DNA of 64,000 nt from Carpediemonas membranifera BICM (taxonomy: Eukaryota; Protista; Fornicata). Shown in pieces: positions 445-22,138 of this stretch. The notes below the pieces were generated by a model. The model was not told the origin of the DNA. It ran no database searches and was given only the letters and a program-made list of their open reading frames with translations. Position 1 is the stretch's first letter, and every line of letters starts with the position of its first letter. Made by a program: the position numbers and the translations under genes. The stretch is from assembly GCA_019828565.1 (NCBI GenBank), contig JAHDYR010000036.1, forward strand, positions 1 through 64,000, given 5' to 3'.

Positions 445-485
445 CGGTAGGGTCTGTCCCCGTACGACCCCCAAAACCCGCAATA
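445..485 (+). mobile_element. 41-bp stub of a variant right end of the Helitron-like element, embedded in telomeric repeats
   Basis: GACCCCCAAAACCCGCAATACCTTA matches the element terminus GACCCCCCAAAATCCGCAATACCTTA; it keeps a GGGTC/GACCC stem. Confidence 0.7.
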
Positions 486-526: not shown

Positions 527-647
527 TCATCTGATGACCCCTGACCCTCAAGTCGAGGTGCCCCCGGGGGTTTTTCGGGGCGCTGAACACGCTGGTGCTA
601 TCAGATTTGGACGATATCCACTCAATCTCTGAGATCGCCTGAGCACA

Positions 648-3600: not shown

Positions 3601-3719
3601 GTCAAAGCATATCTTTACTCAATCTTTTTGACCTCAAGTCGTGGACTGCCCGGGGGTAGTTCGGGGCGCTGAACACGCTGGTGAAGTCCCCTATGCTCCA
3701 TCTCCGCCCCATCTCCGCC
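648..3719 (+). repeat. ~422-bp tandem repeat, 7 full units + partial
   Basis: Anchor CTCAAGTCG recurs at about 668, 1092, 1514, 1938, 2361, 2786, 3209 and 3633. Confidence 0.95.
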
Positions 3720-3785
3720 TGGCCAGATCATGATGCGTCAATTGTCACATATCTGGAAGTCAAGTCTGTTGTAACGCGTCAGGTT

Positions 3786-3867
3786 TGAGCCATGGTGTAG
3801 ATGGTATAGCAGATGTTGGTGAATACAAGAGGTGGTAGGTTCGAATCCCTCCTGGCACATCCTTTTT
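3786..3867 (+). ncRNA. Degenerate tRNA-like Pol III cassette (copy 1)
   Basis: A-box TGGTGTAGATGGT, B-box GGTTCGAATCC, 6/7 acceptor-like stem TGAGCCA/TGGCACA, then T5; D, anticodon and T stems pair poorly. Confidence 0.7.
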
Positions 3868-3961
3868 GGACCTCGGCCATATCTCAGTCAATATTGGTCG
3901 TCATGCCTTGCAACTGCCCAGATTAGCTTGACTAGCCCTAAAGAACACATGGCAGTCAGAT

Positions 3962-4124
3962 TTATTCAAGTTGTTTGGACATGACGAACGCTAAGCCGTT
4001 CAGGACTGAGCCACTGGCGCCGAGCGCAAACAGCGCATCCACGACCGCCCAATAGCGGTCCGGGTTCTTGGACAGCACCTTGGCGCGCTGGAGTGCCTTG
4101 TGCATGACCTGGGACGGTACAGCA
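3962..4124 (-). pseudogene. Probable captured 3' fragment of an unidentified gene (also at about 8499-8661 and 11887-12049)
   Basis: Open frame ...VPSQVMHKALQRAKVLSKNPDRYWAVVDALFALGASGSVLNGLAFVMSKQLE* ending in TAA within AATAAA; absent from the autonomous copy and fused to the RepHel 3' remnant. Confidence 0.45.
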
Positions 4125-4526
4125 GCCGCAGCGCCCCCTGCACCCCACCAACGCATAGCCATGAGATGTCCACCCCAGGCCAAGCCAGTGCCCGCCCCTC
4201 AGCCCGCGTCTCCTATTGTGCACGACATCGAGAGCATATCGATCAGCTCGCCCTCTGCCTCGCCGTCCTCGCAAGGATACGTGCCCCCAAAGCGTTTGCG
4301 GACTACACCACCGCGCCGTATCCTCCCCAAGCGCTCGACTAGGGCCGCACCATCTCCCCTGAGAGAGTCAGCCCCCGCACCTGCCCGCAAGCTCGGCCGC
4401 CCTCGCTCTACCAAGTTCATCATCTACTCGGACAGCGAGGACGACGACGAACATCCCAAGAAGCCGAAGGGGTGCATCACACCGAAGAAGGAAGGACGGA
4501 CTTGCTTCAATCGTAAGAACTATTAG
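4125..4526 (+). pseudogene. 3' remnant of the RepHel ORF (also at about 8662-9064 and 12050-12451)
   Basis: Translates to QRIAMR.PPQAKPVPAPQPASP...KFIIYSDS, nearly identical to the C-terminus of 13532-18622 but with a different last ~25 aa. Confidence 0.9.
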
Positions 4527-5583
4527 TATCGAAGTGGCAGTGGCCACATGTAAATGATTAACGAACGTAGAATGGGTAGAGCGGGGGCTACGGTCGGCTG
4601 CGCCTCCCTCTGCCCCCCTGCACCCCCCGGAATTGAAGACGGGGGCTCCGTCGTTCCTCCGGCTTCGTTCGGCTTCGCTCCGCTCGGGCGCTCGTCGCTA
4701 CGCTCCTCCCGCCCTCCGCTACGCTACGCCTCTCTACGCCTCCGTCACTCTCTCTGCCCCCCTGCGACCCCCCGCGGACTCCGCCCATGGCCTGTAACTA
4801 CGTCAGATCACCCCACAAATTTTTGAATCTCGGGCTGTGATTTACATATGAAAAAAATAAATACCCCCATCCTCCTCAGAGCATGTAATTATGTATTGTA
4901 GTGCGCACCCGTGTTCTCTTCCATTCCATACGCGTCACTCTAGACGTATTCACTCACCATGGACACAAAAAGGCTCTATAAAAATTTGTTGAGGGCCTAA
5001 ATCAAAAATCGGGGAAAATAACGTTCCTACACGTACGCAACATGATACAGCAGTATACTCTGTTTAGCTCCAGCATCAATCCTTGAGGCCAGTAAAAACC
5101 GGTCTTTGAACGCGGTTCGCCAGATTCGGATGGATATCGTGACTCAATCACACTGCGAGAGACTTTCAAAAATTCCAAATCCAGCAGCCCGGAAGCCTCA
5201 GGCCTCGTGCTGTACTGCACAAGAAGTTAGCGATCGCGACTTTTGTCCTATAACTATTTATGCATAATTCAATGTAAAGACGACGGAGTTGAATAGAGCT
5301 TAGGGCGGCGCCTCCGAGCTGACACGCACAGCTATCCAGAGAAGCAATCCGCAGCCCTGAACGCCGTCTGTAAGCATGTGCTCTGACCTCAAAGTCCAAT
5401 TTTGAGGTCCCGTTTTTGAGCGGGAAAATTTAGTATAAAATATTTGCGTTGTCCCAGATTTCAATGCATGTTCGAAGGACCCCTGGGGTAGGCTACACGC
5501 TGCATGTGTCGCCTTCCCTGGCAGGGGCCCAGGGGTCCCGTACCGGGACCCCCCAAAATCCGCAATACCTTACCATAACTTAC

Positions 5584-5608
5584 CTTACCTTACCTTACCT
5601 TACCTTAC
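5584..5608. repeat. Interstitial telomeric spacer (5 x CTTAC)
   Basis: Lies between the right end of copy 1 and the TC start of copy 2. Confidence 0.95.
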
Positions 5609-8256
5609 TCATCTGATGACCCCTGACCCTCAAGTCGAGGTGCCCCCGGGGGTTTTTCGGGGCGCTGAACACGCTGGTGAAGTCCCCTATGCTCCATCTC
5701 TGCTCAATCACCGCCAAATCCCGGGGATCGAATTCCGCGACTCAAACCCAGAGTTGCAGACCTCAGCGTTCACAACCACCCCCGGCTAGACACGTTCTAG
5801 GCCCCATAGAGCACATTTCACTCTTCACCTCGCTGAAACCATGGTCAAGTTGATCCAGCCACGTCGCTCAGCTTCAATCACGCAAGGCGAGCGGACAACG
5901 AGTAGACCACACCCAGATGGAGGCTGAATCGCGACATGTGCGCTCTACAGCTGTCTATAGGCCCGCACGCATACATGGGTGCGAAGTCCCAGCCCTCCAA
6001 TGTCACGTATTGACGAGGTCGTCAAAGCATATCTTTACGCAATCTTTTTGACCTCAAGTCGTGGACTGCCCGGGGGTAGTTCGGGGCGCTGAACACGCTG
6101 GTGAAGTCCCCTATGCTCCATCTCCGCCCCATCACCGCCAAATTCCGAGGATCGAATTCCGCGACTCAAACCCAGAGTTGCAGACCTCAGCGTTCACAAC
6201 CACCCCCGGCTAGACACGTTCTAGGCCCCATAGAGCACATTTCACTCTTCACCTCGCTGAAACCATGGTCAAGTTGATCCAGCCACGTCGCTCAGCTTCA
6301 ATCACGCAAGGCGAGCGGACAACGAGTAGACCACACCCAGATGGAGGCTGAATCGCGACATGTGCGCTCTACAGCTGTCTATAAGCCCGCACGCATACAT
6401 GGGTGCGAAGTCCCAGCCCTCCAATGTCACGTATTGACGAGGTCGTCAAAGCATATCTTTACGCAATCTTTTGACCTCAAGTCGTGGACTGCCCGGGGGT
6501 AGTTCGGGGCGCTGAACACGCTGGTGAAGTCCCCTATGCTCCATCTCCGCCCCATCACCGCCAAATTCCGAGGATCGAATTCCGCGACTCAAACCCAGAG
6601 TTGCAGACCTCAGCGTTCACAACCACCCCCGGCTAGACACGTTCTAGGCCCCATAGAGCACATTTCACTCTTCATCTCGCTGAAACCATGGTCAAGTTGA
6701 TCCAGCCACGTCGCTCAGCTTCAATCACGCAAGGCGAGCGGACAACGAGTAGACCACACCCAGATGGAGGCTGAATCGCGACATGTGCGCTCTACAGCTG
6801 TCTATAGGCCCGCACGCATACATGGGTGCGAAGTCCCAGCCCTCAAATGTCACGTATTGACGAGGTCGTAAAAGCATATCTTTACTCAATCTTTTTGACC
6901 TCAAGTCGTGGACTGCCCGGGGGTAGTTCGGGGCGCTGAACACGCTGGTGAAGTCCCCTATGCTCCATCTCCGCCCCATCACCGCCAAATTCCGAGGATC
7001 GAATTCCGCGACTCAAACCCAGAGTTGCAGACCTCAGCGTTCACAACCACCCCCGGCTAGACACGTTCTAGGCCCCATAGAGCACATTTCACTCTTCACC
7101 TCGCTGAAACCATGGTCAAGTTGATCCAGCCACGTCGCTCAGCTTCAATCACGCAAGGCGAGCGGACAACGAGTAGACCACACCCAGATGAAGGCTGAAT
7201 CGCGACATGTGCGCTCTACAGCTGTCTATAGGCCCGCACGCATACATGGGTGCGAAGTCCCAGCCCTCCAATGTCACGTATTGACGAGGTCGTCAAAGCA
7301 TATCTTTACGCAATCTTTTGACCTCAAGTCGTGGACTGCCCGGGGGTAGTTCGGGGCGCTGAACACGCTGGTGAAGTCCCCTATGCTCCATCTCCGCCCC
7401 ATCACCGCCAAATCCCGGGGATCGAATTCCGCGACTCAAACCCAGAGTTGCAGACCTCAGCGTTCACAACCACCCCCGGCTAGACACGTTCTAGGCCCCA
7501 TAGAGCACATTTCACTCTTCACCTCGCTGAAACCATGGTCAAGTTGATCCAGCCACGTCGCTCAGCTTCAATCACGCAAGGCGAGCGGACAACGAGTAGA
7601 CCACACCCAGATGAAGGCTGAATCGCGACATGTGCGCTCTACAGCTGTCTATAGGCCCGCACGCATACATGGGTGCGAAGTCCCAGCCCTCCAATGTCAC
7701 GTATTGACGAGGTCGTCAAAGCATATCTTTACGCAATCTTTTGACCTCAAGTCGTGGACTGCCCGGGGGTAGTTCGGGGCGCTGAACACGCTGGTGAAGT
7801 CCCCTATGCTCCATCTCCGCCCCATCACCGCCAAATCCCGGGGATCGAATTCCGCGACTCAAACCCAGAGTTGCAGACCTCAGCGTTCACAACCACCCCC
7901 GGCTAGACACGTTCTAGGCCCCATAGAGCACATTTCACTCTTCACCTCGCTGAAACCATGGTCAAGTTGATCCAGTCACGTCGCTCAGCTTCAATCACGC
8001 AAGGCGAGCGGACAACGAGTAGACCACACCCAGATGAAGGCTGAATCGCGACATGTGCGCTCTACAGCTGTCTATAGGCCCGCACGCATACATGGGTGCG
8101 AAGTCCCAGCCCTCCAATGTCACGTATTGACGAGGTCGTCAAAGCATATCTTTACTCAATCTTTTTGACCTCAAGTCGTGGACTGCCCGGGGGTAGTTCG
8201 GGGCGCTGAACACGCTGGTGAAGTCCCCTATGCTCCATCTCCGCCCCATCTCCGCC
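5609..8256 (+). repeat. ~422-bp tandem repeat, 6 full units + partial
   Basis: Anchors at about 5629, 6053, 6476, 6900, 7323, 7746 and 8170. Confidence 0.95.
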
Positions 8257-8322
8257 TGGCCAGATCATGATGCGTCAATTGTCACATATCTGGAAGTCAA
8301 GTCTGTTGTAACGCGTCAGGTT

Positions 8323-8404
8323 TGAGCCATGGTGTAGATGGTATAGCAGATGTTGGTGAATACAAGAGGTGGTAGGTTCGAATCCCTCCTGGCACATCCT
8401 TTTT
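8323..8404 (+). ncRNA. Degenerate tRNA-like Pol III cassette (copy 2)
   Basis: Identical to 3786-3867. Confidence 0.7.
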
Positions 8405-10119
8405 GGACCTCGGCCATATCTCAGTCAATATTGGTCGTCATGCCTTGCAACTGCCCAGATTAGCTTGACTAGCCCTAAAGAACACATGGCAGTCAGATTT
8501 ATTCAAGTTGTTTGGACATGACGAACGCTAAGCCGTTCAGGACTGAGCCACTGGCGCCGAGCGCAAACAGCGCATCCACGACCGCCCAATAGCGGTCCGG
8601 GTTCTTGGACAGCACCTTGGCGCGCTGGAGTGCCTTGTGCATGACCTGGGACGGTACAGCAGCCGCAGCGCCCCCCTGCACCCCACCAACGCATAGCCAT
8701 GAGATGTCCACCCCAGGCCAAGCCAGTGCCCGCCCCTCAGCCCGCGTCTCCTATTGTGCACGACATCGAGAGCATATCGATCAGCTCGCCCTCTGCCTCG
8801 CCGTCCTCGCAAGGATACGTGCCCCCAAAGCGTTTGCGGACTACACCACCGCGCCGTATCCTCCCCAAGCGCTCGACTAGGGCCGCACCATCTCCCCTGA
8901 GAGAGTCAGCCCCCGCACCTGCCCGCAAGCTCGGCCGCCCTCGCTCTACCAAGTTCATCATCTACTCGGACAGCGAGGACGACGACGAACATCCCAAGAA
9001 GCCGAAGGGGTGCATCACACCGAAGAAGGAAGGACGGACTTGCTTCAATCGTAAGAACTATTAGTATCGAAGTGGCAGTGGCCACATGTAAATGATTAAC
9101 GAACGTAGAATGGGTAGAGCGGGGGCTACGGTCGGCTGCGCCTCCCTCTGCCCCCTGCACCCCCGGAATTGAGACGGGGGGCTCCGTTCGTTCCTCCGGC
9201 TTCGTTCGGCTTCGCTCCGCTCCGGGCGCTCGTCGCTACGCTCCTCCCGCCCTCCGCTACGCTACGCCTCTCTACGCCTCCGTCACTCTCTCTGCCCCCC
9301 TGCGACCCCCCGCGGACTCCGCCCATGGCCTGTAACTACGTCAGATCACCCCACAAATTTTTGAATCTCGGGCTGTGATTTACATATGAAAAAATAAATA
9401 CCCCCATCCTCCTCAGAGCATGTAATTATGTATTGTAGTGCGCACCCGTGTTCTCTTCCATTCCATACGCGTCACTCTAGACGTATTCACTCACCATGGA
9501 CACAAAAAGGCTCTATAAAAATTTGTTGAGGGCCTAAATCAAAAATCGGGGAAAATAACGTTCCTACACGTACGCAACATGATACAGCAGTATACTCTGT
9601 TTAGCTCCAGCATCAATCCTTGAGGCCAGTAAAACCGGTCTTTGAACGCGGTTCGCCAGATTCGGATGGATATCGTGACTCAATCACACTGCGAGAGACT
9701 TTCAAAAATTCCAAATCCAGCAGCCCGGAAGCCTCAGGCCTCGTGCTGTACTGCACAAGAAGTTAGCGATCGCGACTTTTGTCCTATAACTATTTATGCA
9801 TAATTCAATGTAAAGACGACGGAGTTGAATAGAGCTTAGGGCGGCGCCTCCGAGCTGACACGCACAGCTATCCAGAGAAGCAATCCGCAGCCCTGAACGC
9901 CGTCTGTAAGCATGTGCTCTGACCTCAAAGTCCAATTTTGAGGTCCCGTTTTTGAGCGGGAAAATTTAGTATAAAATATTTGCGTTGTCCCAGATTTCAA
10001 TGCATGTTCGAAGGACCCCTGGGGTAGGCTACACGCTGCATGTGTCGCCTTCCCTGGCAGGGGCCCAGGGGTCCCGTACCGGGACCCCCCAAAATCCGCA
10101 ATACCTTACCATAACTTAC

Positions 10120-10144
10120 CTTACCTTACCTTACCTTACCTTAC
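10120..10144. repeat. Interstitial telomeric spacer (5 x CTTAC)
   Basis: Lies between copies 2 and 3. Confidence 0.95.
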
Positions 10145-10265
10145 TCATCTGATGACCCCTGACCCTCAAGTCGAGGTGCCCCCGGGGGTTTTTCGGGGCG
10201 CTGAACACGCTGGTGCTATCAGATTTGGACGATATCCACTCAATCTCTGAGATCGCCTGAGCACA

Positions 10266-11643
10266 TCATCTGATGACCCCTGACCCTCAAGTCGAGGTGC
10301 CCCCGGGGGTTTTTCGGGGCGCTGAACACGCTGGTGAAGTCCCCTATGCTCCATCTCTGCTCAATCACCGCCAAATCCCGGGGATCGAATTCCGCGACTC
10401 AAACCCAGAGTTGCAGACCTCAGCGTTCACAACCACCCCCGGCTAGACACGTTCTAGGCCCCATAGAGCACATTTCACTCTTCACCTCGCTGAAACCATG
10501 GTCAAGTTGATCCAGCCACGTCGCTCAGCTTCAATCACGCAAGGCGAGCGGACAACGAGTAGACCACACCCAGATGGAGGCTGAATCGCGACATGTGCGC
10601 TCTACAGCTGTCTATAGGCCCGCACGCATACATGGGTGCGAAGTCCCAGCCCTCAAATGTCACGTATTGACGAGGTCGTAAAAGCATATCTTTACTCAAT
10701 CTTTTTGACCTCAAGTCGTGGACTGCCCGGGGGTAGTTCGGGGCGCTGAACACGCTGGTGAAGTCCCCTATGCTCCATCTCCGCCCCATCACCGCCAAAT
10801 TCCGAGGATCGAATTCCGCGACTCAAACCCAGAGTTGCAGACCTCAGCGTTCACAACCACCCCCGGCTAGACACGTTCTAGGCCCCATAGAGCACATTTC
10901 ACTCTTCACCTCGCTGAAACCATGGTCAAGTTGATCCAGCCACGTCGCTCAGCTTCAATCACGCAAGGCGAGCGGACAACGAGTAGACCACACCCAGATG
11001 AAGGCTGAATCGCGACATGTGCGCTCTACAGCTGTCTATAGGCCCGCACGCATACATGGGTGCGAAGTCCCAGCCCTCCAATGTCACGTATTGACGAGGT
11101 CGTCAAAGCATATCTTTACGCAATCTTTTGACCTCAAGTCGTGGACTGCCCGGGGGTAGTTCGGGGCGCTGAACACGCTGGTGAAGTCCCCTATGCTCCA
11201 TCTCTGCTCAATCACCGCCAAATCCCGGGGATCGAATTCCGCGACTCAAACCCAGAGTTGCAGACCTCAGCGTTCACAACCACCCCCGGCTAGACACGTT
11301 CTAGGCCCCCATAGAGCACATTTCACTCTTCACCTCGCTGAAACCATGGTCAAGTTGATCCAGTCACGTCGCTCAGCTTCAATCACGCAAGGCGAGCGGA
11401 CAACGAGTAGACCACACCCAGATGAAGGCTGAATCGCGACATGTGCGCTCTACAGCTGTCTATAGGCCCGCACGCATACATGGGTGCGAAGTCCCAGCCC
11501 TCCAATGTCACGTATTGACGAGGTCGTCAAAGCATATCTTTACTCAATCTTTTGACCTCAAGTCGTGGACTGCCCGGGGGTAGTTCGGGGCGCTGAACAC
11601 GCTGGTGAAGTCCCCTATGCTCCATCTCCGCCCCATCTCCGCC
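10266..11643 (+). repeat. ~422-bp tandem repeat, 3 full units + partial
   Basis: Anchors at about 10286, 10710, 11133 and 11557. Confidence 0.95.
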
Positions 11644-11709
11644 TGGCCAGATCATGATGCGTCAATTGTCACATATCTGGAAGTCAAGTCTGTTGTAACG
11701 CGTCAGGTT

Positions 11710-11792
11710 TGAGCCATGGTGTAGATGGTATAGCAGATGTTGGTGAATACAAGAGGTGGTAGGTTCGAATCCCTCCTGGCACATCCTTTTTT
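11710..11792 (+). ncRNA. Degenerate tRNA-like Pol III cassette (copy 3)
   Basis: Same as copies 1-2, with a T6 tail. Confidence 0.7.
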
Positions 11793-13531
11793 GGACCTCG
11801 GCCATATCTCAGTCAATATTGGTCGTCATGCCTTGCAACTGCCCAGATTAGCTTGACTAGCCCTAAAGAACACATGGCAGTCAGATTTATTCAAGTTGTT
11901 TGGACATGACGAACGCTAAGCCGTTCAGGACTGAGCCACTGGCGCCGAGCGCAAACAGCGCATCCACGACCGCCCAATAGCGGTCCGGGTTCTTGGACAG
12001 CACCTTGGCGCGCTGGAGTGCCTTGTGCATGACCTGGGACGGTACAGCAGCCGCAGCGCCCCCTGCACCCCACCAACGCATAGCCATGAGATGTCCACCC
12101 CAGGCCAAGCCAGTGCCCGCCCCTCAGCCCGCGTCTCCTCTTGTGCACGACATCGAGAGCATATCGATCAGCTCGCCCTCTGCCTCGCCGTCCTCGCAAG
12201 GATACGTGCCCCCAAAGCGTTTGCGGACTACACCACCGCGCCGTATCCTCCCCAAGCGCTCGACTAGGGCCGCACCATCTCCCCTGAGAGAGTCAGCCCC
12301 CGCACCTGCCCGCAAGCTCGGCCGCCCTCGCTCTACCAAGTTCATCATCTACTCGGACAGCGAGGACGACGACGAACATCCCAAGAAGCCGAAGGGGTGC
12401 ATCACACCGAAGAAGGAAGGACGGACTTGCTTCAATCGTAAGAACTATTAGTATCGAAGTGGCAGTGGCCACATGTAAATGATTAACGAACGTAGAATGG
12501 GTAGGCAGGGCTACGGTCGGCTGCGCCTCCCTCTGCCCCCTGCACCCCCGGAATTGAAGACGGGGGGCTCCGTCATTCCTCCGGCTTCGTTCGGCTTCGC
12601 TCCGCTCCGGGCGCTCGTCGCTACGCTCCTCCCGCCCTCCGCTACGCTACACCTCTCTAAGCCTCCGTCACTCTCTCTGCCCCCTGCGACCCCCCGCGGA
12701 CTCCGCCCATGGCCTGTAACTACGTCAGATCACCCCACAAATTTTTGAATCTCGGGCTGTGATTTACATATGAAAAAATAAATACCCCCATCCTCCTCAG
12801 AGCATGTAATTATGTATTGTAGTGCGCACCCGTGTTCTCTTCCATTCCATACGCGTCACTCTAGACGTATTCACTCACCATGGACACAAAAAGGCTCTAT
12901 AAAAATTTGTTGAGGGCCTAAATCAAAAATCGGGGAAAATAACGTTCCTACACGTACGCAACATGATACAGCAGTATACTCTGTTTAGCTCCAGCATCAA
13001 TCCTTGAGGCCAGTAAAACCGGTCTTTGAACGCGGTTCGCCAGATTCGGATGGATATCGTGACTCAATCACACTGCGAGAGACTTTCAAAAATTCCAAAT
13101 CCAGCAGCCCGGAAGCCTCAGGCCTCGTGCTGTACTGCACAAGAAGTTAGCGATCGCGACTTTTGTCCTATAACTATTTATGCATAATTCAATGTAAAGA
13201 CGACGGAGTTGAATAGAGCTTAGGGCGGCGCCTCCGAGCTGACACGCACAGCTATCCAGAGAAGCAATCCGCAGCCCTGAACGCCGTCTGTAAGCATGTG
13301 CTCTGACCTCAAAGTCCAATTTTGAGGTCCCGTTTTTGAGCGGGAAAATTTAGTATAAAATATTTGCGTTGTCCCAGATTTCAATGCATGTTCGAAGGAC
13401 CCCTGGGGTAGGCTACACGCTGCATGTGTCGCCTTCCCTGGCAGGGGCCCAGGGGTCCCGTACCGGGACCCCCCAAAATCCGCAATACCTTACCATAACT
13501 TACCCAGTGGATTAACGAGGACTCGCCCCAC

Positions 13532-16500
13532 ATGCAGCTCGTCACTGCACCCGGTCAGGTCGGAACCCCATCGTACTGGCACAACGTCAAGCGTCACCTC
13601 CACGCTATTGTCATGACGATAGGAGCTCCACACCTCTTCTTCACATTCACTGTCGACCCGGCGTACATCACCAGCGAGATCCGCCGCCTGTATCGTGAGC
13701 TGAACGTCGACACCGGCCACTACAGCTTTGGAGACAACCCCGTGGACGAAACGCGCATTGCTCACGCATACTTCGAGCACATCACGCTTCTGCTCATGGC
13801 CGCCATCCCCTCTGCTCGACACATATTCAAGCGCATGGAGGAGCAAGAGCAGCTCGGCCTCCCCCACTACCACGTGGCTCTCTGGTGCGAGACTGAAGGC
13901 GTGCCCGATATTGGCGATGAGCTTGACCGCAGAGAGTTCTCCCCAGCGTTCGCAGAGCTAATCAACACATTTATCGGCGTCCAGCTCACCGAAGACGCTG
14001 CCCGGTATCAACTGCACACCCACAACTCATCATGCGAGGCCGCAGACGGCACATGCACAGAGGGCTACCCAAAGCCGGTCAACGATACTGCCCGCTACTC
14101 ATCCAAAGAGCGCCAGTGGCTCTACCGCCGAGAGGAGGCTGACCGCAACGTCGTGGAGTACTGCCCGCAGCTTCTGAAGTTCACCCACGGCCAGATGCAC
14201 GTCCGACCCATCTTCAACGCAGAGGGCATCGACTACATCGTCAAGTACATGCTGAAAACTGACGCCGAGACCGAGATCGACGTCACCGACAACAAGGCTG
14301 ACAAGGCCTACAGCACGTTCGCAACCATGCGTGTCATCTCCGTCTACACCATGGCATGGAGACTGCTTGGATACCGCACTTACTCATCCAGCATGGGCTA
14401 CAAGCACGTCCCAATCGACCAGCTGCCGCAACAGCGACTGTACTCTCCTTTCCATGGCTTCTGGGCAGCCCGGCTCGGCCCGATCGAGATGTACTTCCTG
14501 CGCCCAGAGAGTCTGGACAAACTCACGATCGTCCAGTTCTACCAGTGGTACGAACTCAAGCGCATCACTGTCGAGCAGTACGACGAGCTGGCAGCAGAGG
14601 ACGAGCCCATGCTTGTCAACGCAGACCACGCGGACCACGACCCCACCCTGTACAAGCAATACTTCTTCCGCTATCTCGTCAAGCGCAGACTCAAGATCAA
14701 GGCCGTGTCCTTCAACATGACCAGCCCAGAGGATGGCGAGAGGCACTACCAGGCGCTGCTGTTCCTGTCCAAGCCCTGGCGTTCTGACAAGGAGATTCGG
14801 TGCGGCAAGGGCGAGAACCCCGGCCCCTTCACGTCTTACTACAACGCATGCCGGCGCGAAGGCCTAGTGCACTCCACACCCCGCAACATGGTCGCCGACC
14901 TTGCCGAGTGCATCAAGACGAACGCCGACGCCGGAACCCTCGACCTCCAGGGCGCGATCGCGATGCTCAGAGCTGCTCTCCGCCGCAGGTTCTCACAGGA
15001 CGAGATCATGGCAGCGCTCACCGGCATCTCCACGCACGCGTTCTTTACAACAATGCAGCGCTACACCCTCAACTCCTTTAACGAGGCGTTCGTGAAGACT
15101 ACCACGGTCCTGCAGCTGTTCGACAAGCCCCTTCGCGTCTATACGCCCCAACCGGATATCACACTCAACGAGCAGCAGGCAGAAATCAAGTCGTTCGTCA
15201 GGCAGCGTATGCGGACCAGCTGTCACTTCATTGCCGTCGTCATGGGCAAGGCTGGCTCGGGCAAGTCACTCCTGATCAGAGAGATCGCCCACATGATTGC
15301 AGCAGACTTTGGACGCCTCGTGCTGGTCACAGGCTCCACTGGTGTGTCCGCTGCCCTCCTTGACGGCGCCACGATCCACTCGTTCTTCAAGTACAACGTC
15401 AGCGAGAAGTTCGAGGCACCCTCGCCTGGGTCCACCGAGCGCCTCATCCTCTCAAAGGTGTCGACCATCATCATCGACGAGGCTATGATGCTGAGCAGAG
15501 CTGATATCGCTGACATCAGCGACACACTGCGCCAGATCAGAGGTGGCGAGCTCCCCTTCGGCGGAGTCAACATGATCTTCGTGGGTGACCCGAACCAGCT
15601 TCCGCCCGTGCCAAAGAAGCACGCGGCTGTCCTATCCGCACTGCACTATCACTGGGAGCAGCACAACACGGCCAAGCTATTCGAGCTCCAGAGCTCATTC
15701 CGTCAGCAGGCCGACCCGGCGTTCACGGCCATCCTCGACGGCATCGCGTCTACGAAGATTGACAGCAGAAGACTCACGCCACTCTACAAGCGCGCAGTAC
15801 CAGACACGCCCGAGTCACTCAAGCTGATGATCAAGCTCATGCTTGAGGGGCACACCATGATCACAGCCCGCCGAGACAGAGCCCACAGCCTCAACCGCAT
15901 TGTCGTGAACACACTCGCAAAGTTAGACGGCTGCCCAGTCACTCAACTCGTGTCATATGTCGCCTGGGCGAAGGTTATCGATGGCGTTCCCGGGTTCTCG
16001 CGTTTCTCGTGCGGCACTGCCAACGTCCACTCGGAGCTAGAAGACACGTCGGCCAAAAGAGACTACCACGACCGCCTCGAGCGCATCGACTTCTGTGTCG
16101 GCTGCCGCGTCATCCTCACGTGGAACGTCATCACCGAGCTCGGCCTAGTCAACGGTGCGAAGGCAACCATCCTCTCGATCAACCAGTCCGACCCGTCAGT
16201 AGAGGTGCAGATGGCCGACTCAGGCCAGGTCCACATCATCCGCGAGATGTCCGTGAAACAGGGCATCTTCACACACACGTTCATCCCACTCATGCCGGCG
16301 TACGTCCTGACAATTCACAAGGCTCAGGGGCAGACGATCCCCCGTCTCATCGTCGACCTGCGGGAGAACATGAACTACAAGCAGGACCGCCGCTCTAACG
16401 ACTTCTGGGAGGTTGGACAGCTGTACACCGCCCTCTCTCGCGCCCCAACTCTCGACGCGCTCACGATATTCGGCGGAGTTGACACGCACGACAAGATGAC

Positions 16501-18622
16501 CGTCAACGGATTCACATTCAACACTGTCAAGCCGGTCCCAGAGCTGTTTCGCCCAATCCATACGAAGGTCGTCACATCCCGTGTGGACTTCCTGCACAGG
16601 AAGATGCTTCCCCTGACCGACATGATCGTCAGGCACACCACTCGAGAGGCCTTCGTCGACAACTCAGGCGTCAGCGTCGACGACAACACCAACGAGGTCG
16701 TCCGCAAGATGCTCAAGGTCAAAGACTGGATCAGGTTCGCCAACGCAGCGACCATGTACGCCAAGCGCAGCACCACCCGCGGCCCAGCCCTGCCCCGCAA
16801 GCGCCTCATCCCCGTTGCTCCGAAGCTGAAGAAGACTAAGCGCAAGCAGACCAAGCGTAACCCCCGCAAGCCCGGCGCGAAGAGCAAGCCCAGAGTGAGA
16901 CACATAGACACGGCCTTCAGCGACGCAGAGCTCGAATCAGACGTCGAACTCGAGGCGCTGACCGACTATGAGTGCGAAGACAACGTCGCTGCCATTGGGT
17001 TCGAGCCTCTCAACGCCACGTACCGCTCACTACACGAGCTGAACCTCACCCGCGTCCAGCGGAGCCTCGTACAGCGCTTCCGTCGCGACAACTTCTACCG
17101 CATCGAGAAACAGAACGAGGTGCACGAGCTCGCCGCAGCAGGCATCATCAGCGCGGAGGAGACCACTGCCATTGACCAATGGGTGCAGGAGGCGTCAAGC
17201 AAAGACCCTGGCACAGTCATATCGATCATCAGCAACGACACCGACGCGGCGAAAGAACTCCTCGACACAGCAGAGGCCGAGGACGCCAACGAGGCAATCC
17301 AGACTATTCTCTCCCGCATCGAAGAAGCACGCCGCGCCCAAGAGCATCCTCCAGCCGCCCACAAGCCTGCCCAGCCCAAGACCACGACCAAGCGCAAGGA
17401 CAAGCGGAAGCACAAACGCAAGAACAAGCCCACCATCGTCTTCGACATGGGCTCTCCCGAGTCCCCGCCTACACCTGACTACAGCAAGGGAGACGCGACA
17501 TACGCGCTCACTGTCCAACACCGCCGCAAGTCCCGCGAGAGAACAGAGCCGCCCACGCCCACCATTCCGGTAGTCGAGCCTCCAACGCAGCCAGAGGACG
17601 AGATGGCCAGCAAGTGCCCGCTGCTCAACCCCAGAAAGATCACGACCCGGGACTACAGCAACGCTCGGCTCTACGACAACGACGGCGGTGGCGACTGCGC
17701 CATCTTTGCCCTCGCCATGCGCACCAAGGCGTTCTACGACTTCTTCATGTCGCTTGGCACCGGCGACGACGTGGATGGACGCGTCAAGGTCTTCCGGCAG
17801 CGGTTCAGGCAGTACTGCTGTGACTACAGAGACCCCCACTCCCTCATATTCCTCGGCTTTGCCCCCGAGAGAGCTCACACGATCACGCTCGAGGGAACGT
17901 TCTTGAATATTCCCACCGTGTGGGCTTTCTACTGTCACGAGTGCGGCATCAAGAACGACTCGCTGATTCTGTACAAGAATCAGAACACGATTGAGTACAC
18001 CATCAGGCCTGCAGACGATGACCCCGACCGCCGCGTGCCCAAGTGCCAAGACGTCATCAACCCAGACAAGGCCATTCTCGCGACCGGCATCCGCTACAAC
18101 GACGGCATTCACTTTATGTGTGTCTTCCCCGAAGACGGGATCGAACGCCAGCTCGAGTACGTGGACTACTCGGCTGCAACGAGAGAAAGCGCCCTGAATC
18201 CAATCGAGATCTCTGACGATGACGAGCCGCCGCAGCGCCCCCCTGCCCCCCGCCAACGCATAGCCATGAGACGTCCACCACAGGCCAAGCCAGTGCCCGC
18301 CCCTCAGCCCGCGTCTCCTATTGTGCACGACATCGAGAGCATATCGATCAGCTCGCCCTCTGCCTCGCCGTCCTCGCAAGGATACGTGCCCCCAAAGCGT
18401 TTGCGGACTACACCACCGCGCCGTATCCTCCCCAAGTGCTCGACTAGGGCCGCACCATCTCCCCTGAGAGAGTCAACCCCCGCACCTGCCCGCAAGCTCG
18501 GCCGTCCGCGCTCAACCAAGTTCATCATCTACTCGGACAGCGACGATGATCCTCAGAAGCGGAGAGGAAGCCACTTGGCCAAGAAGGGCAAGCGGAACAG
18601 CTTCCACAACAAGCATGATTAA
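13532..18622 (+). CDS. Rep (HUH endonuclease)-PIF1 helicase-OTU-like protease polyprotein, N-terminally truncated, 1696 aa
   Basis: Rep: GTPSYW, GAPHLFFTFT, EQLGLPHYHVALW (HUH), QLHTHNSSC, YIVKYMLK. PIF1: GKAGSGKS, IIIDEAMM, FGGVNMIFVGDPNQLPPV, GLVNG, AYVLTIHKAQGQT, GQLYTALSR. OTU-like: DGGGDCAIFALA ... YNDGIHF. Confidence 0.95.
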   Translation: MQLVTAPGQVGTPSYWHNVKRHLHAIVMTIGAPHLFFTFTVDPAYITSEIRRLYRELNVDTGHYSFGDNPVDETRIAHAYFEHITLLLMAAIPSARHIFKRMEEQEQLGLPHYHVALWCETEGVPDIGDELDRREFSPAFAELINTFIGVQLTEDAARYQLHTHNSSCEAADGTCTEGYPKPVNDTARYSSKERQWLYRREEADRNVVEYCPQLLKFTHGQMHVRPIFNAEGIDYIVKYMLKTDAETEIDVTDNKADKAYSTFATMRVISVYTMAWRLLGYRTYSSSMGYKHVPIDQLPQQRLYSPFHGFWAARLGPIEMYFLRPESLDKLTIVQFYQWYELKRITVEQYDELAAEDEPMLVNADHADHDPTLYKQYFFRYLVKRRLKIKAVSFNMTSPEDGERHYQALLFLSKPWRSDKEIRCGKGENPGPFTSYYNACRREGLVHSTPRNMVADLAECIKTNADAGTLDLQGAIAMLRAALRRRFSQDEIMAALTGISTHAFFTTMQRYTLNSFNEAFVKTTTVLQLFDKPLRVYTPQPDITLNEQQAEIKSFVRQRMRTSCHFIAVVMGKAGSGKSLLIREIAHMIAADFGRLVLVTGSTGVSAALLDGATIHSFFKYNVSEKFEAPSPGSTERLILSKVSTIIIDEAMMLSRADIADISDTLRQIRGGELPFGGVNMIFVGDPNQLPPVPKKHAAVLSALHYHWEQHNTAKLFELQSSFRQQADPAFTAILDGIASTKIDSRRLTPLYKRAVPDTPESLKLMIKLMLEGHTMITARRDRAHSLNRIVVNTLAKLDGCPVTQLVSYVAWAKVIDGVPGFSRFSCGTANVHSELEDTSAKRDYHDRLERIDFCVGCRVILTWNVITELGLVNGAKATILSINQSDPSVEVQMADSGQVHIIREMSVKQGIFTHTFIPLMPAYVLTIHKAQGQTIPRLIVDLRENMNYKQDRRSNDFWEVGQLYTALSRAPTLDALTIFGGVDTHDKMTVNGFTFNTVKPVPELFRPIHTKVVTSRVDFLHRKMLPLTDMIVRHTTREAFVDNSGVSVDDNTNEVVRKMLKVKDWIRFANAATMYAKRSTTRGPALPRKRLIPVAPKLKKTKRKQTKRNPRKPGAKSKPRVRHIDTAFSDAELESDVELEALTDYECEDNVAAIGFEPLNATYRSLHELNLTRVQRSLVQRFRRDNFYRIEKQNEVHELAAAGIISAEETTAIDQWVQEASSKDPGTVISIISNDTDAAKELLDTAEAEDANEAIQTILSRIEEARRAQEHPPAAHKPAQPKTTTKRKDKRKHKRKNKPTIVFDMGSPESPPTPDYSKGDATYALTVQHRRKSRERTEPPTPTIPVVEPPTQPEDEMASKCPLLNPRKITTRDYSNARLYDNDGGGDCAIFALAMRTKAFYDFFMSLGTGDDVDGRVKVFRQRFRQYCCDYRDPHSLIFLGFAPERAHTITLEGTFLNIPTVWAFYCHECGIKNDSLILYKNQNTIEYTIRPADDDPDRRVPKCQDVINPDKAILATGIRYNDGIHFMCVFPEDGIERQLEYVDYSAATRESALNPIEISDDDEPPQRPPAPRQRIAMRRPPQAKPVPAPQPASPIVHDIESISISSPSASPSSQGYVPPKRLRTTPPRRILPKCSTRAAPSPLRESTPAPARKLGRPRSTKFIIYSDSDDDPQKRRGSHLAKKGKRNSFHNKHD

Positions 18623-18662
18623 ATCGGTAATTGTACAGACGTGATTACTGTAACAGCGGGTG

Positions 18663-18881
18663 CTACGGTCGGCTGCGCCTCCCTCTGCCCCCCTGCACCC
18701 CCCGGAATTGAAGACGGGGGGGCTCCGTTCGTTCCTCCGGCTTCGTTCGGCTTCGCTTCGCTCCGGGCGCTCGTCGCTACGCTCCTCCCGCCCTCCGCTA
18801 CGCTACACCTCTCTAAGCCTCCGTCACTCTCTCTGCCCCCCTGCGACCCCCCGCGGACTCCGCCCATGGCCTGTAACTACG
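18663..18881 (-). other. Cluster of C-GNA-G ssDNA mini-hairpin motifs downstream of the ORF (also at about 4587-4802, 9126-9340 and 12511-12724)
   Basis: 15 CTNCG pentamers counted on the + strand in ~220 bp (CGNAG on the - strand), including GCGAAGC, GCGTAGC and GGCGCAGCC. Confidence 0.7.
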
Positions 18882-19551
18882 TCAGATCACCCCACAAATT
18901 TTTGAATCTCGGGCTGTGATTTACATATGAAAAAATAAATACCCCCATCCTCCTCAGAGCATGTAATTATGTATTTTAGTGCGCACCCGTGTTCTCTTCC
19001 ATTCCATACGCGTCACTCTAGACGTATTCACTCACCATGGACACAAAAAGGCTCTATAAAAATTTGTTGAGGGCCTAAATCAAAAATCGGGGAAAATAAC
19101 GTTCCTACACGTACGCAACATAATACAGCAGTATACTCTGTTTAGCTCCAGCATCAATCCTTGAGGCCAGTAAAACCGGTCTTTGAACGCGGTTCGCCAG
19201 ATTCGGATGGATATCGTGACTCAATCACACTGCGAGAGACTTTCAAAAATTCCAAATCCAGCAGCCCGGAAGCCTCAGGCCTCGTGCTGTACTGCACAAG
19301 AAGTTAGCGATCGCGACTTTTGTCCTATAACTATTTATGCATAATTCAATGTAAAGGCGACGGAGTTGAACAGCGAATTTTTTGTGCCCCCTAGGAAACC
19401 CATAGCACTGTACAATGCAGTAATCCGCAGCCCTGAACACCGTCTGTAGCGTGTGCTCTGACCTCAAAGTCCAATTTTGAGGTCCCGTTTTTGAGCGTGA
19501 AAATTTAGTATAAAATATTTGCGTTGTCCCAGATTTCAATGCATGTTCGAA

Positions 19552-19658
19552 GGACCCCTGGGGTAGGCTACACGCTGCATGTGTCGCCTTCCCTGGCAGG
19601 GGCCCAGGGGTCCCGTACCGGGACCCCCCAAAATCCGCAATACCTTACCATAACTTAC
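19552..19658 (+). other. Element right terminus: nested inverted repeats, perfect 9-bp hairpin and telomere-like tail
   Basis: GGACCCCTGGG (19552-62) / CCCAGGGGTCC (19603-13); GGGGTCCCG-TAC-CGGGACCCC (19607-27); ends AATACCTTACCATAACTTAC. Identical in all four long copies. Confidence 0.9.
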
Positions 19659-21630
19659 ATATCCCACACCTCGCCCACGCATCAGCCGCGCTCAACGCCC
19701 TCCTAAAGGGATCGCCGCAGAAGTCGGCCCCCCTCGATTGGACTGCCACTGAGGACGAAGCATTCGCCCGTATGAAGACCCTAGTAGCCGAGCACACCGC
19801 CCTCGCGCTCCCAGACCTGAGTGCAAAGTGGACTCTCGAGACCGACGCATCGTCGACCGCCATCGGTGGTGTACTGTGGCAGGGCGAGGGTGACGAGAAG
19901 GTCCCACTCGCCTTCTACAGCAAGACCCTCGACGAGACCCAGCAACGGTGGTCCACGGTGGAACAGGAGCTTTTCGCCATTGTCTATTGTGTAACGCGAC
20001 CAGAGTTTTCCCCCCTCTTCAAGCTGAAGCCGTTCGAGCTTCGCACGGACCATCGTAATCTGATATGGCTACTCAGGAAGACAGACGAGGACGGCACTAA
20101 GAAACTGACACGATGGCGACTCACCATGACAGAGTATCCGTATAACGTCACACACATAGCTGGAGCGCAGAACCTCGTAGCCGACGCACTGTCGCGGCCA
20201 TCATCTCAGCGCAAGAACGAGGTGCGCCGCTCGATCGACCACGTCACCACGACGCGCCAAGAGCAGATCACCAGGGCGCACGCCGGTGCACAGGGCCACG
20301 TCGGCCCAGACCAGACCATCGCCAATCTGAAGCAGTCCGGTGTCACGTGGCCAGGCATGTCGGATGACGTCCGCGCGACCTTACGCCAGTGTCCAATCTG
20401 TCGCAAGACAAAGCCAGCCCGCAAGGAGCCGATCAAGTGGCACTCTGTGGCGTTGGCTTAAAGCAAAAGGGTGTTTATCAATTGATTACTCCACAACTCT
20501 ACTCAGCGCATCCGCCCATTCGAGACGGTGCAGGTGGACACCATTGGCCCTTTGCCCGAGAGAGACGGTCTCAAGTACGTCATCACGGTGGTGGACGTGT
20601 TCTCGAAGTTCACCATATTGAAGCCCACACGGTCAACGAGCGCAGCCGAGGCAGCAGCCGCATTGCTGGAGATCTGGGCGACTTTCGGCGTCCCGGCCGA
20701 GCTCCAGTCTGACCAAGGTACACAGTTCAGGAATGCCCTAGTCGAGGAGATGAACGAGCGACTGAGCCTCAAGCACCGGTTCAGTACGGCATATCATCCG
20801 GCCAGCAACGGCGTAGTCGAACGCCTGAATGGTACCGTCATGAGACGCTTAAGAGCGCTCCTGCTGGACGCCCGCGACGACAACTGGCCCGCATACCTGC
20901 CCATCGCCCAGCACGTTATCAACGCCACCCGCCACTCCACCACAGGCCTCAGCCCCTTCGAACTATTGTTCGGACGCAAGTCAACCATGCTGCGCGTCGC
21001 GCCCGACGCCCTGACCAACGCAACCCAGATGCTCGAGCCTGGCTCAGTCGAAGCCGACGACATCGTCCGCTTCCAGGCCCACGTCACGTCGCTCCAACAA
21101 CTTGCCGCGATCAAGGTCAAAGCCTACGAGGTAAACAAGGCTGCAGGCTCCCCGGACAGCACACGGGCCTGGGAGAACGAATCCTACGTCCTGCTGAGAT
21201 ACCCGGGCAAGCCGCCGACCAAGCTACTCCCGCCTCTGCGCGGACCGCTCCGCATGGAGGGGAAGGGCGATCACCCCAACACCTACAAGGTGATGGATCT
21301 CGTGTCGAAGTGCGTCGCCACAGTCCACGCAGACCGACTCGTCACATTCCACGCCGACGGCCTCACGGAGAAGGAGCTCGAGGAAATTGCCGCCACGAGC
21401 AAGATGAACAACCCGTGGAGGCAGTCGTAGGCCACCGTAAGAAGAAGAACGGCTCTCTGGAGCTACTGATCCGTTGGGAAGGCCTCACCCCCGACGAGGA
21501 CTCATACATCCCCTATAATCGCTACTACGACCAGCTCGAGGCTATCGACAGTTATCTCGAGCTCAATCCTGGTCTCAAGCCGATGTTTGAGAGTGCTAAG
21601 AAGAAGTTCCGCAGGAGCGGTCGCCGTTAG
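19659..21630 (+). mobile_element. 5'-truncated, disrupted Ty3/gypsy (chromovirus-type) pol: RT connection, RNase H, integrase, chromodomain
   Basis: LETDASSTAIGGVL, EQELFAIV, LRTDHRNL, NLVADALSR (RNase H); H..H..CPIC zinc site; VDTIGPLP, SDQGTQF, YHPASNGVVER (integrase); VEAVVGHR...LLIRWEG (chromodomain, frameshifted near 21400). Confidence 0.93.
20446..20495. mobile_element. 50-bp miniature insertion with TGTGG...CCACA ends and 4-bp target duplication ACTC
   Basis: ACTC at 20442-45 and 20496-99; removing the insert plus one copy restores KWHSTQRIRPFE in frame. Confidence 0.8.
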
Positions 21631-21655
21631 TCGTGCGACACGCACTGGGAGGAAG

Positions 21656-22138
21656 TGTGCCCTTAACCTGCGGAATTCGTAAACAGTCTTTATCATATTT
21701 CTGGGCCCTAGCACGGCACACGCCCGAGCCTGTCCCGGACCTAAACGACGAATCCCGTCGCAGGTCACGGTATCCCGCTCGCCGAGGCGTCGAGTATAAG
21801 GGTCAAACCCCATAACCAGTGTTGGAGTCGCTGGTGAGGGACCTCTTGACAAGCCAACCAAGCTGTCACGATCAGCAGCCGTAACTCTGGGACTGATCAC
21901 CTCGGACGCACGGTACCACGACGCCCCTCACGAGGAGGCTGCAAGGCCCTCGAGTCGCCTTTCCTTTCTTGTTGAGTTCGCGTCGCTGAGGCTCCACAAA
22001 CTCTTGGCTTTCTGCACCTGTTTCGCCGACCATCCACAGCAAGCTTCAGGGTGGGAAGTGAGATTTTAGAGTCAAGTCAAGTAAAGTCGCTCTTCGTCTC
22101 TTCGGCTTATAGGGTTCCCCTTCGGGTTTTTTCGCACA
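21656..22138 (+). repeat. Putative 3' LTR of the gypsy element
   Basis: Purine tract GGGAGGAAG (21647-55) then TGTGC; possible matching end GCACA at 22134-38; TATAA near 21795. No second LTR is present to confirm the right boundary. Confidence 0.45.

Follow-up and report, generated by a model that had tools for sequence, protein, structure and literature searches.

Structure of the stack at the left end of contig C37

The window (the whole stretch of DNA analysed, 64,000 nt at the start of contig C37 of Carpediemonas membranifera) opens with telomere repeats, followed by four head-to-tail copies of a Helitron-like element, which encodes a Rep nuclease fused to a Pif1-like helicase (RepHel), and by part of a gypsy-like retroelement. 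It is probably the left end of a chromosome, capped by a one-way stack of copies of this telomere-specialised element. Genome-wide searches covered the assembly of 24.2 Mb in 69 contigs. The features are listed below, with ORF denoting an open reading frame.

1-444, + strand: terminal telomere tract (CCTTA)n, C-rich strand, noisy in 1-170
445-485, + strand: 41-nt stub of a diverged right end inside the telomere tract, similar to the 41 nt that immediately precede the right end's telomere-like tail
486-526, + strand: about 8 telomere repeats after the stub
527-5583, + strand: ORF-less copy 1, with left end TCATCTG..., 121-bp terminal duplication, 7 satellite units (424 bp), RepHel C-terminal remnant, 3' region and right end
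5584-5608, + strand: (CTTAC)5 spacer, in phase with the right-end tail
5609-10119, + strand: ORF-less copy 2, with 6 satellite units and no 121-bp duplication
10120-10144, + strand: (CTTAC)5 spacer
10145-13503, + strand: ORF-less copy 3, with 3 satellite units and the 121-bp duplication
13504-19658, + strand: RepHel-bearing copy 4 of the same element, 5'-truncated within the Rep domain region and directly abutting the right end of copy 3
13505-18622, + strand: truncated RepHel ORF of 1705 aa, open from the joint
19607-19627, + strand: sub-terminal hairpin (9-bp stem, 3-nt loop), ending 31 nt before the terminus
19643-19658, + strand: telomere-like tail of the right end, CCTTACCATAACTTAC
19659-21720, + strand: 3' part of a gypsy-like long terminal repeat (LTR) retroelement, ~2.06 of ~4.9 kb, amputated at the joint

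The telomere repeat is a 5-mer, CCTTA on one strand and TAAGG on the other. Genome-wide, (CCTTA)n is found only at contig ends and in telomere orientation (starts of C14, C31 and C37, end of C24), and the terminal tracts are ~95-530 nt long. The repeat of the related Giardia, TAGGG, is also a 5-mer and differs by one change, and a literature search on 5-mer telomere motifs returned nothing useful.

Copies 1-3 each hold the left end TCATCTG..., the 424-bp satellite (7, 6, and 3 units, respectively), the last 150 RepHel codons, and the 3' region. As initially annotated, the right ends at 5583 and 10119 are followed by (CTTAC)5, which amounts to exactly 25 nt at each, and the next left ends start immediately after these spacers, at 5609 and 10145. 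The 5'-TC start (TCATCTG after telomere repeats) occurs in one stack only, in three copies and two internal duplicates. The number of satellite units climbs toward the telomere (3, 6, 7), and the 121-bp terminal duplication of the left end is present in copies 1 and 3 (527-660 and 10145-10278) and absent from copy 2 (5609). For a tRNA-like cassette at 3786-3867, neither ARAGORN nor Rfam (gathering threshold) reported anything.

According to the initial annotation, the right end is fused to unlike neighbours, namely the interior of a RepHel ORF after 13503 and the interior of gypsy pol after 19658. The RepHel frame is indeed open to the junction (13505-18622, 1705 aa). As a foreign target, however, the RepHel had to be rejected, since its ORF continues into the shared 3' region of the element. 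The region ~18239-19658 (~1.4 kb, comprising the RepHel C-terminal part and ~1 kb past the stop) is the same as ~4134-5583, 8672-10119, and 12059-13503. Because both the RepHel C-terminus and the 3' region are shared repeat, 13504-19658 belongs to the element too, as a longer copy truncated at its 5' end, and only the gypsy-like neighbour is truly different.

The window ORF matches positions 88-189 of 191 in the Pfam Helitron_like_N profile, and hence is N-terminally truncated, and it also contains a PIF1 helicase (E=4.5e-26). All parts expected of a Helitron-like RepHel (HUH motif, two tyrosines, and a Pif1-like helicase of superfamily 1B) are present, with HUH (LPHYHVALW) at 13859-13885, the two-tyrosine motif (DYIVKYMLK) at 14231-14257, and Walker A at 15245-15268, as well as a C-terminal GGGDC cysteine motif at 17684-17710. 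Pfam scans of the ORF revealed no reverse transcriptase (RT) domain, and no endonuclease family, including the AP endonuclease of Helentrons, was found in the 1705-aa ORF or its C-terminal 405 aa. Identity to the nearest non-self proteins is only 23-30%. Among other copies, the one at C1:929911-930990 has its break ~30 bp further inside and abuts unrelated AT-rich DNA, while a second RepHel family has ~400 residues upstream of the point equivalent to the window truncation.

As for the gypsy-like neighbour, the reading of pol interior after 19658 is borne out by IPHLAHASAALNALLKG from 19661 and by an rve integrase domain at 20528-21430. This element is ~4.9 kb long with terminal repeats of only ~70 bp, and it must have been active very recently, since its 17 genome copies are near-identical (~99-100%); the window copy is ~100% identical to the 16 others. 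Intact copies read ...caaact before ATATCC at the break, which gives an overlap of 0 nt with ...cttac. The missing 5' parts of the two targets had been reported as not found distal to the insertions, and this holds: the 1.5 kb preceding the break in intact gypsy-like copies has no match anywhere in the window, and the RepHel N-terminal part is absent from the assembly.

The right end of the element

The 10-mer CATAACTTAC is found exactly at 5574-5583, 10110-10119, 13494-13503, and 19649-19658 of the window (4 matches versus 0.04 expected by chance), and the 211 bp preceding each of these four right ends are 99-100% identical (family D18). All copies examined terminate in ...ATAACTTAC, except for two joint types without the last C. 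In comparison with Helitron-like elements, the 3' end is CTTAC instead of CTRR, and the hairpin expected near the terminus is present (9-bp stem, 3-nt loop, 31 nt before the end). A diverged right end on C15, only 70% identical overall, keeps the telomere-like tail with one change, and a different hairpin was read by eye near it. An asymmetric terminal inverted repeat was also considered, and the 8 nt shared by the left end and the right-end region are unconvincing.

The terminal CTTAC might have been a repeat added by telomerase. However, the inner edges of telomerase-type tracts vary (CCTT/, CCT/, TTAC/, where the slash marks the joint), whereas the 14 joints that lead directly into other DNA all finish at the same base, and therefore the terminal CTTAC is the element's own end.

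Genome-wide placement of right ends

Genome-wide, ~34 matches to the final 240 bp of the element were counted. Head-to-tail stacks are located at six contig ends, i.e. at the starts of C31, C37, C38, and C46 (+ strand) and at the ends of C15 and C3 (− strand), where every right end points inward. The only other copies are four in an internal cluster on C1. Apart from this cluster, the placement is that of the telomeric Helitrons of Paramecium, with copies only at chromosome ends, left end distal and right end proximal. The genome-wide right-end search gave no classic interstitial insertion with both target halves flanking the element.

Within the C1 cluster (C1:880000-944000) two groups of right ends face each other, one on the − strand (881, 913, and 918 kb) and the other on the + strand (943.5 kb). 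The DNA separating them contains RepHel fragments that match the window copy at ~92% identity, and no long telomere tract is listed there. The cluster looks like a relic of end-to-end fusion or inversion of old stacks, or else a misassembly.

Beneath the stacks at C31:49099-60240 (L056) and C3:488982-494981 (L057) there are 5'-truncated ORFs with RT domains, oriented like the stacks and with reading frames open as far as the joint. Those on C31 are in tandem, ~4.6 kb apart, with an antisense fragment of small-subunit ribosomal RNA between them (Rfam RF01960, E=2e-42, L056:2982-3180). These ORFs may belong to non-LTR elements associated with ribosomal DNA or with telomeres, as in Giardia.

These RT-encoding elements under two stacks, equally oriented and on C31 in tandem, would also suit addition of the Helitron-like element through RNA: as for Athena or HeT-A, a transcript would anneal to the G-overhang by the telomere-complementary tail at its end, and telomerase or the RT of a retroelement would copy it into DNA. 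The architecture (3' end proximal, variable 5' truncation, telomere-like 3' tail) is identical to that of telomeric retroelements. Nevertheless, this route appears quite unlikely: the element encodes RepHel and no RT, has no poly(A), apparently starts with 5'-TC, and ends at an exact terminus beside a hairpin, as Helitron right ends do, and no RNA-seq expression of Helitron-related genes is reported in the genome paper (PMC8516963).

Joints between the right end and its neighbours

Neighbours of the last base were read in 31 right-end copies, those elsewhere in the genome from 3.2-kb loci around each right end. They form ~21 distinct joints, at all of which the right end is invariant; variation of its position among copies, named in the initial annotation as evidence that would contradict one-ended attachment, was not observed. 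At 14 of the ~21 joints the right end leads straight into non-telomeric DNA, and at 7 it is followed by 1-5 telomere repeats. Direct joints enter the element itself (its own ORF at four points, the satellite and 3' region at five) as well as other DNA: the gypsy-like element, the second RepHel family, two RT ORFs, and two unique sequences. The Paramecium pattern, in which repeats always follow the right end and lie on both sides, is thus absent from 14 distinct joints.

Chimeric joining of repeats in the long-read assembly could be suspected for the gypsy joint, which is found on this contig alone. As a general explanation it is highly improbable, since the ~21 different joints, spread over seven contigs, all share one precise end, several of them are seen on more than one contig, and chimeras would not keep to one exact base.

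Longer or intact references provide the pre-break bases for nine direct joints, with microhomology of 0, 0, 0, 0, 0, 0, 1, 2, and 2 nt and an extra A at one joint. For the seven breaks within the element, read against longer window copies, the overlaps are 0, 0, 0 (with the extra A), 2 (terminal C missing), 1, 0, and 2 nt. The second RepHel family is intact across the break at C26:504/505, reading ...aaccca before CTGATG with 0 nt overlap. Pre-break and post-break bases at the nine breaks are T/A, A/C, A/A, T/C, C/G, A/G, G/C, T/A, and C/T, with no common dinucleotide and no CTTAC-like, AT, or TT motif. Reading the bases 5' of the breaks had been suggested as a check on sequence targeting, and its outcome is no CTTAC-like motif and 0-2 nt of microhomology. 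The targets of Helitron-like elements (AT, or TT/TC) are accordingly not seen. Target duplication, reported as absent when the stretch was first read, is not visible at any joint, in agreement with Helitron-like elements.

The 7 telomeric joints are all in phase (CTTAC/CTTAC), and two of the repeat-bearing joints lead into right-end stubs of 27 nt and ~190 nt. Stubs of 27 nt and 41 nt sit between telomere repeats, and the 41-nt one in the window (445-485) is evidence that a copy was added, lost its distal part, and was then capped again. Where short repeat tracts meet the broken sequence, the two share 2-3 nt at the inner edge, in varying register, a pattern that looks like de novo telomere addition (telomerase healing).

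These joints bear on whether the element is simply inserted at both ends into C-strand telomere repeats and later exposed to terminal erosion, with the direct joints being insertions into older copies or deletions made by Rep beside the right end. Telomere repeats lie on both sides of the three complete copies, the registers CTTAC/TC... and ...CTTAC/CTTAC fit cleavage after CTTAC, and such insertion accounts for the orientation (PMC13085455). Conversely, the tracts after the right end measure 0-25 nt versus ~95-530 nt for terminal tracts, which uniform site choice would rarely yield; 14 distinct joints have no repeat or common target dinucleotide; and the distal target half is never seen upstream of a left end. 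Two-ended insertion as the general explanation therefore seems rather unlikely.

The same joints are found again on C31, C38, and C15, which means that recombination, too, carries parts of stacks from end to end. Over 1.5 kb, the copy of the second RepHel family under the C38 stack (C38:22084 onward) and the one at the start of C26 (C26:505 onward) are 100% identical (L043 and L044), suggesting very recent copying between two chromosome ends. Both observations, together with the two identical (CTTAC)5 spacers in the window, would suit a stack built by recombination only, i.e. by break-induced replication, unequal exchange, or rolling-circle copying of extrachromosomal circles, as for yeast Y', with no transposition. 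This is very unlikely, because homology-driven invasion cannot place 14 non-homologous sequences after one exact base with an overlap of 0-2 nt. The recombination alternative offered in the initial annotation is thus retained as a way of spreading stacks between ends, but alone it cannot make precise joints to unrelated sequence.

Order of the copies in time

Compared over the last 1 kb, distal copies from all stacks group into a single cluster with an internal difference of ~1%, while the innermost copies of the C37, C31, C38, and C3 stacks differ from this young cluster by 4-11%. With the greatest divergence at the innermost position in four stacks, copies can be ordered from proximal-old to distal-young, and the divergence pattern would fit inside-out addition. 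The series from oldest (gypsy break) to newest (telomere) proposed at the outset is supported to this extent. It does not hold in absolute terms, since the gypsy-like element under the innermost window copy is itself very young (~100% identity to 16 copies). In addition, part of the divergence of innermost copies is a difference between sub-families and not age in place.

Proposed mode of attachment

Given a constant right end, variable 5' truncation, fixed orientation, location at contig ends (bar C1), motif-free joints, and older basal copies, the best reading is one-ended, right-end-first capture of the element by critically short or broken chromosome ends, which we regard as moderately likely. 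Each copy would join the then-current terminus by its right end, the right terminal sequence (RTS) made up of the sub-terminal hairpin and the telomere-like tail. A terminus consisting of a critically short tract of 1-5 repeats would give an in-phase joint, as from base pairing with the G-strand overhang, and a non-telomeric broken or eroded end would give a blunt one. The distal (left) side would afterwards be shortened, by erosion or incomplete transfer, and then be re-capped by telomerase or receive the next copy. Recombination would additionally copy whole stack pieces between chromosome ends.

Two versions of the joining step can be envisaged. In the first, RepHel would nick the bottom strand at the precise right terminus, remaining attached to the 5' end of that strand until the free 3'-OH of the chromosome resolves the link. 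In the second, the canonical single-stranded top-strand intermediate would anneal to the 3' overhang by its telomere-complementary 3' tail and then be copied. At non-telomeric ends the second version would rely on capture by alternative end joining, the host's sole end-joining route: Carpediemonas has no Ku70/80 or DNA-PKcs, but alternative end joining is present (PMC8516963). Both versions fit the sequence equally well. The reversed, IS91-like initiation considered in the initial annotation is not required, since Helraiser cuts both strands precisely at the RTS in vitro (PMC4778049), and a top-strand intermediate with a free telomere-complementary 3' tail gives the same polarity.

A further step would be that RepHel or its single-stranded intermediate heals chromosomes, joining the right end to any free 3'-OH, telomeric or not; we put this forward tentatively, as possible rather than probable. 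One-ended attachment or healing, as originally proposed, is in part supported by the invariant right end at ~21 joints and by the motif-free breaks, while the RepHel target, the polarity, and the age of the break had to be corrected.

Several points weigh against capture by the right end. A full-length RepHel of the window family is absent from the whole assembly, the window copy being the longest, and according to the genome paper Helitron-related genes show no RNA-seq expression (PMC8516963); current activity is therefore unproven. The complete left end is limited to three copies in one stack, and for complete copies two-ended integration may consequently hold. Since many joints recur on several contigs, independent events are fewer than copies, and each joint rests on a single long-read assembly. 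A copy of the diverged group sits mid-stack on C15. Finally, sequence-independent strand transfer by an HUH nuclease is a hypothetical activity.

Related elements and other features

The right end of the second RepHel family (C38, C26) could not be defined, and only a loose resemblance was found near L043:9355-9395. A ~150-nt GC-rich motif located right after the RepHel stop (window 18663-18881) is nearly unchanged in this family and occurs twice in its 3' region (L043:7050-7200 and 8445-8590); the two RepHel proteins are only 33-34% identical. A third RepHel lineage, 64% identical in DNA, is represented by a 1590-aa ORF at C26:8462-13234.

At C14:1-330 and C24:491500-491663 (L059 and L060) telomere repeats sit directly on unique DNA with no Helitron stack, and both ends share the joint CCTTA/CAGG. 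A candidate telomerase reverse transcriptase was found at C39:742208-742561 (L058), with a Telomerase_RBD match of 31.5 bits, above the Pfam cut-off, in an 834-aa open frame. Host ORFs in the window are typically long and intron-free, and a single 986-aa ORF at 61027-63987 (− strand) encodes a class I-type PI3-kinase with a Ras-binding domain.

Comparison with known systems

Among mobile elements, retrotransposons are known to build telomeres, their RNA being copied onto the chromosome end: HeT-A, TART, and TAHRE in Drosophila, GilM and GilT in Giardia, MoTeR in Magnaporthe, and the Athena Penelope-like elements. The Carpediemonas element resembles them in that its copies form terminal arrays, head to tail, with proximal 3' ends and 5' truncations of variable extent, and retroelements can heal broken ends; Athena and MoTeR also share the telomere-like 3' tail. 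Unlike them, it has RepHel and no RT, an apparent 5'-TC start, and a sub-terminal hairpin, and telomerase repeats are still present. Here, a DNA transposon behaves like the telomere-building retrotransposons of flies.

IS91 and ISCR are bacterial elements with an HUH transposase and a tetranucleotide target. Their one-ended transposition is similar in the type of transposase, the constant end downstream of the gene, and the variable far end, although the latter is explained here equally well by truncation on the distal side. Yeast Y' elements likewise encode a helicase, lie in tandem at chromosome ends with short telomere tracts between them, and spread by recombination. Their junctions, however, are defined by homology, and they have neither a Rep nuclease nor a precise end joined to arbitrary DNA.

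With canonical Helitrons, including Helraiser, the element shares the HUH and two-tyrosine Rep fused to a Pif1-like helicase, apparently the 5'-TC, the 3' hairpin, and the lack of target duplication (PMC4778049, PMC5876387). It differs in its CTTAC rather than CTRR 3' end, in having no AT target, and in that no dispersed insertions were found; moreover, its right end is constant, whereas canonical variation arises on the 3' side through read-through. Telomeric Helitron fragments of Drosophila biarmipes are randomly oriented and were judged inactive (PMC6581046), and for cnidarian Helitrons only subtelomeric accumulation is reported (PMC11934779).

The closest system is that of the telomere-capping Helitrons of Paramecium aurelia, which include both RepHel elements and ORF-less, satellite-rich derivatives limited to chromosome ends (PMC13085455). 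Their orientation, like that of the Carpediemonas element, is absolute, with the left end distal, and their right end carries telomere-like bases followed by short C-strand repeats (PMC13085455). The polarity, which the initial annotation considered unusual, is thus already published and not unprecedented (PMC13085455). In Paramecium it was explained by ordinary insertion into telomere repeats (BMC Biol 2026; PMC13085455). The two systems differ in host (here a metamonad with a 5-mer telomere repeat) and in ORF size (~5 kb here, not 9-10 kb); most Carpediemonas copies are 5'-truncated and stacked head-to-tail, and 14 direct joints to non-telomeric DNA are unexplained by the C-strand insertion model. 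What sets Carpediemonas apart from Paramecium is the distant host, the smaller ORFs, the pervasive truncation and stacking, and the direct joints to broken non-telomeric DNA.

For a rolling-circle DNA transposon, Paramecium is the one published precedent of telomere building, and Carpediemonas provides a second, phylogenetically distant system for studying telomere capping by Helitrons. The finding adds to the unusual DNA metabolism of a host that has no Ku and also no origin recognition complex (ORC) or Cdc6, and whose genome paper touches Helitron-related genes only in passing (PMC8516963). If healing is confirmed, a DNA transposon would be a working part of end maintenance beside telomerase, in a eukaryote with neither Ku-dependent end joining nor ORC. 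The collected joints speak for direct capture of the right end by deprotected or broken ends and not for insertion of the Paramecium style, which yields a testable biochemical prediction for HUH nucleases, the joining of DNA to an arbitrary 3'-OH. Right-end-first capture, if true, would also account for the short repeats that follow the right ends in the Paramecium telomeric Helitrons.

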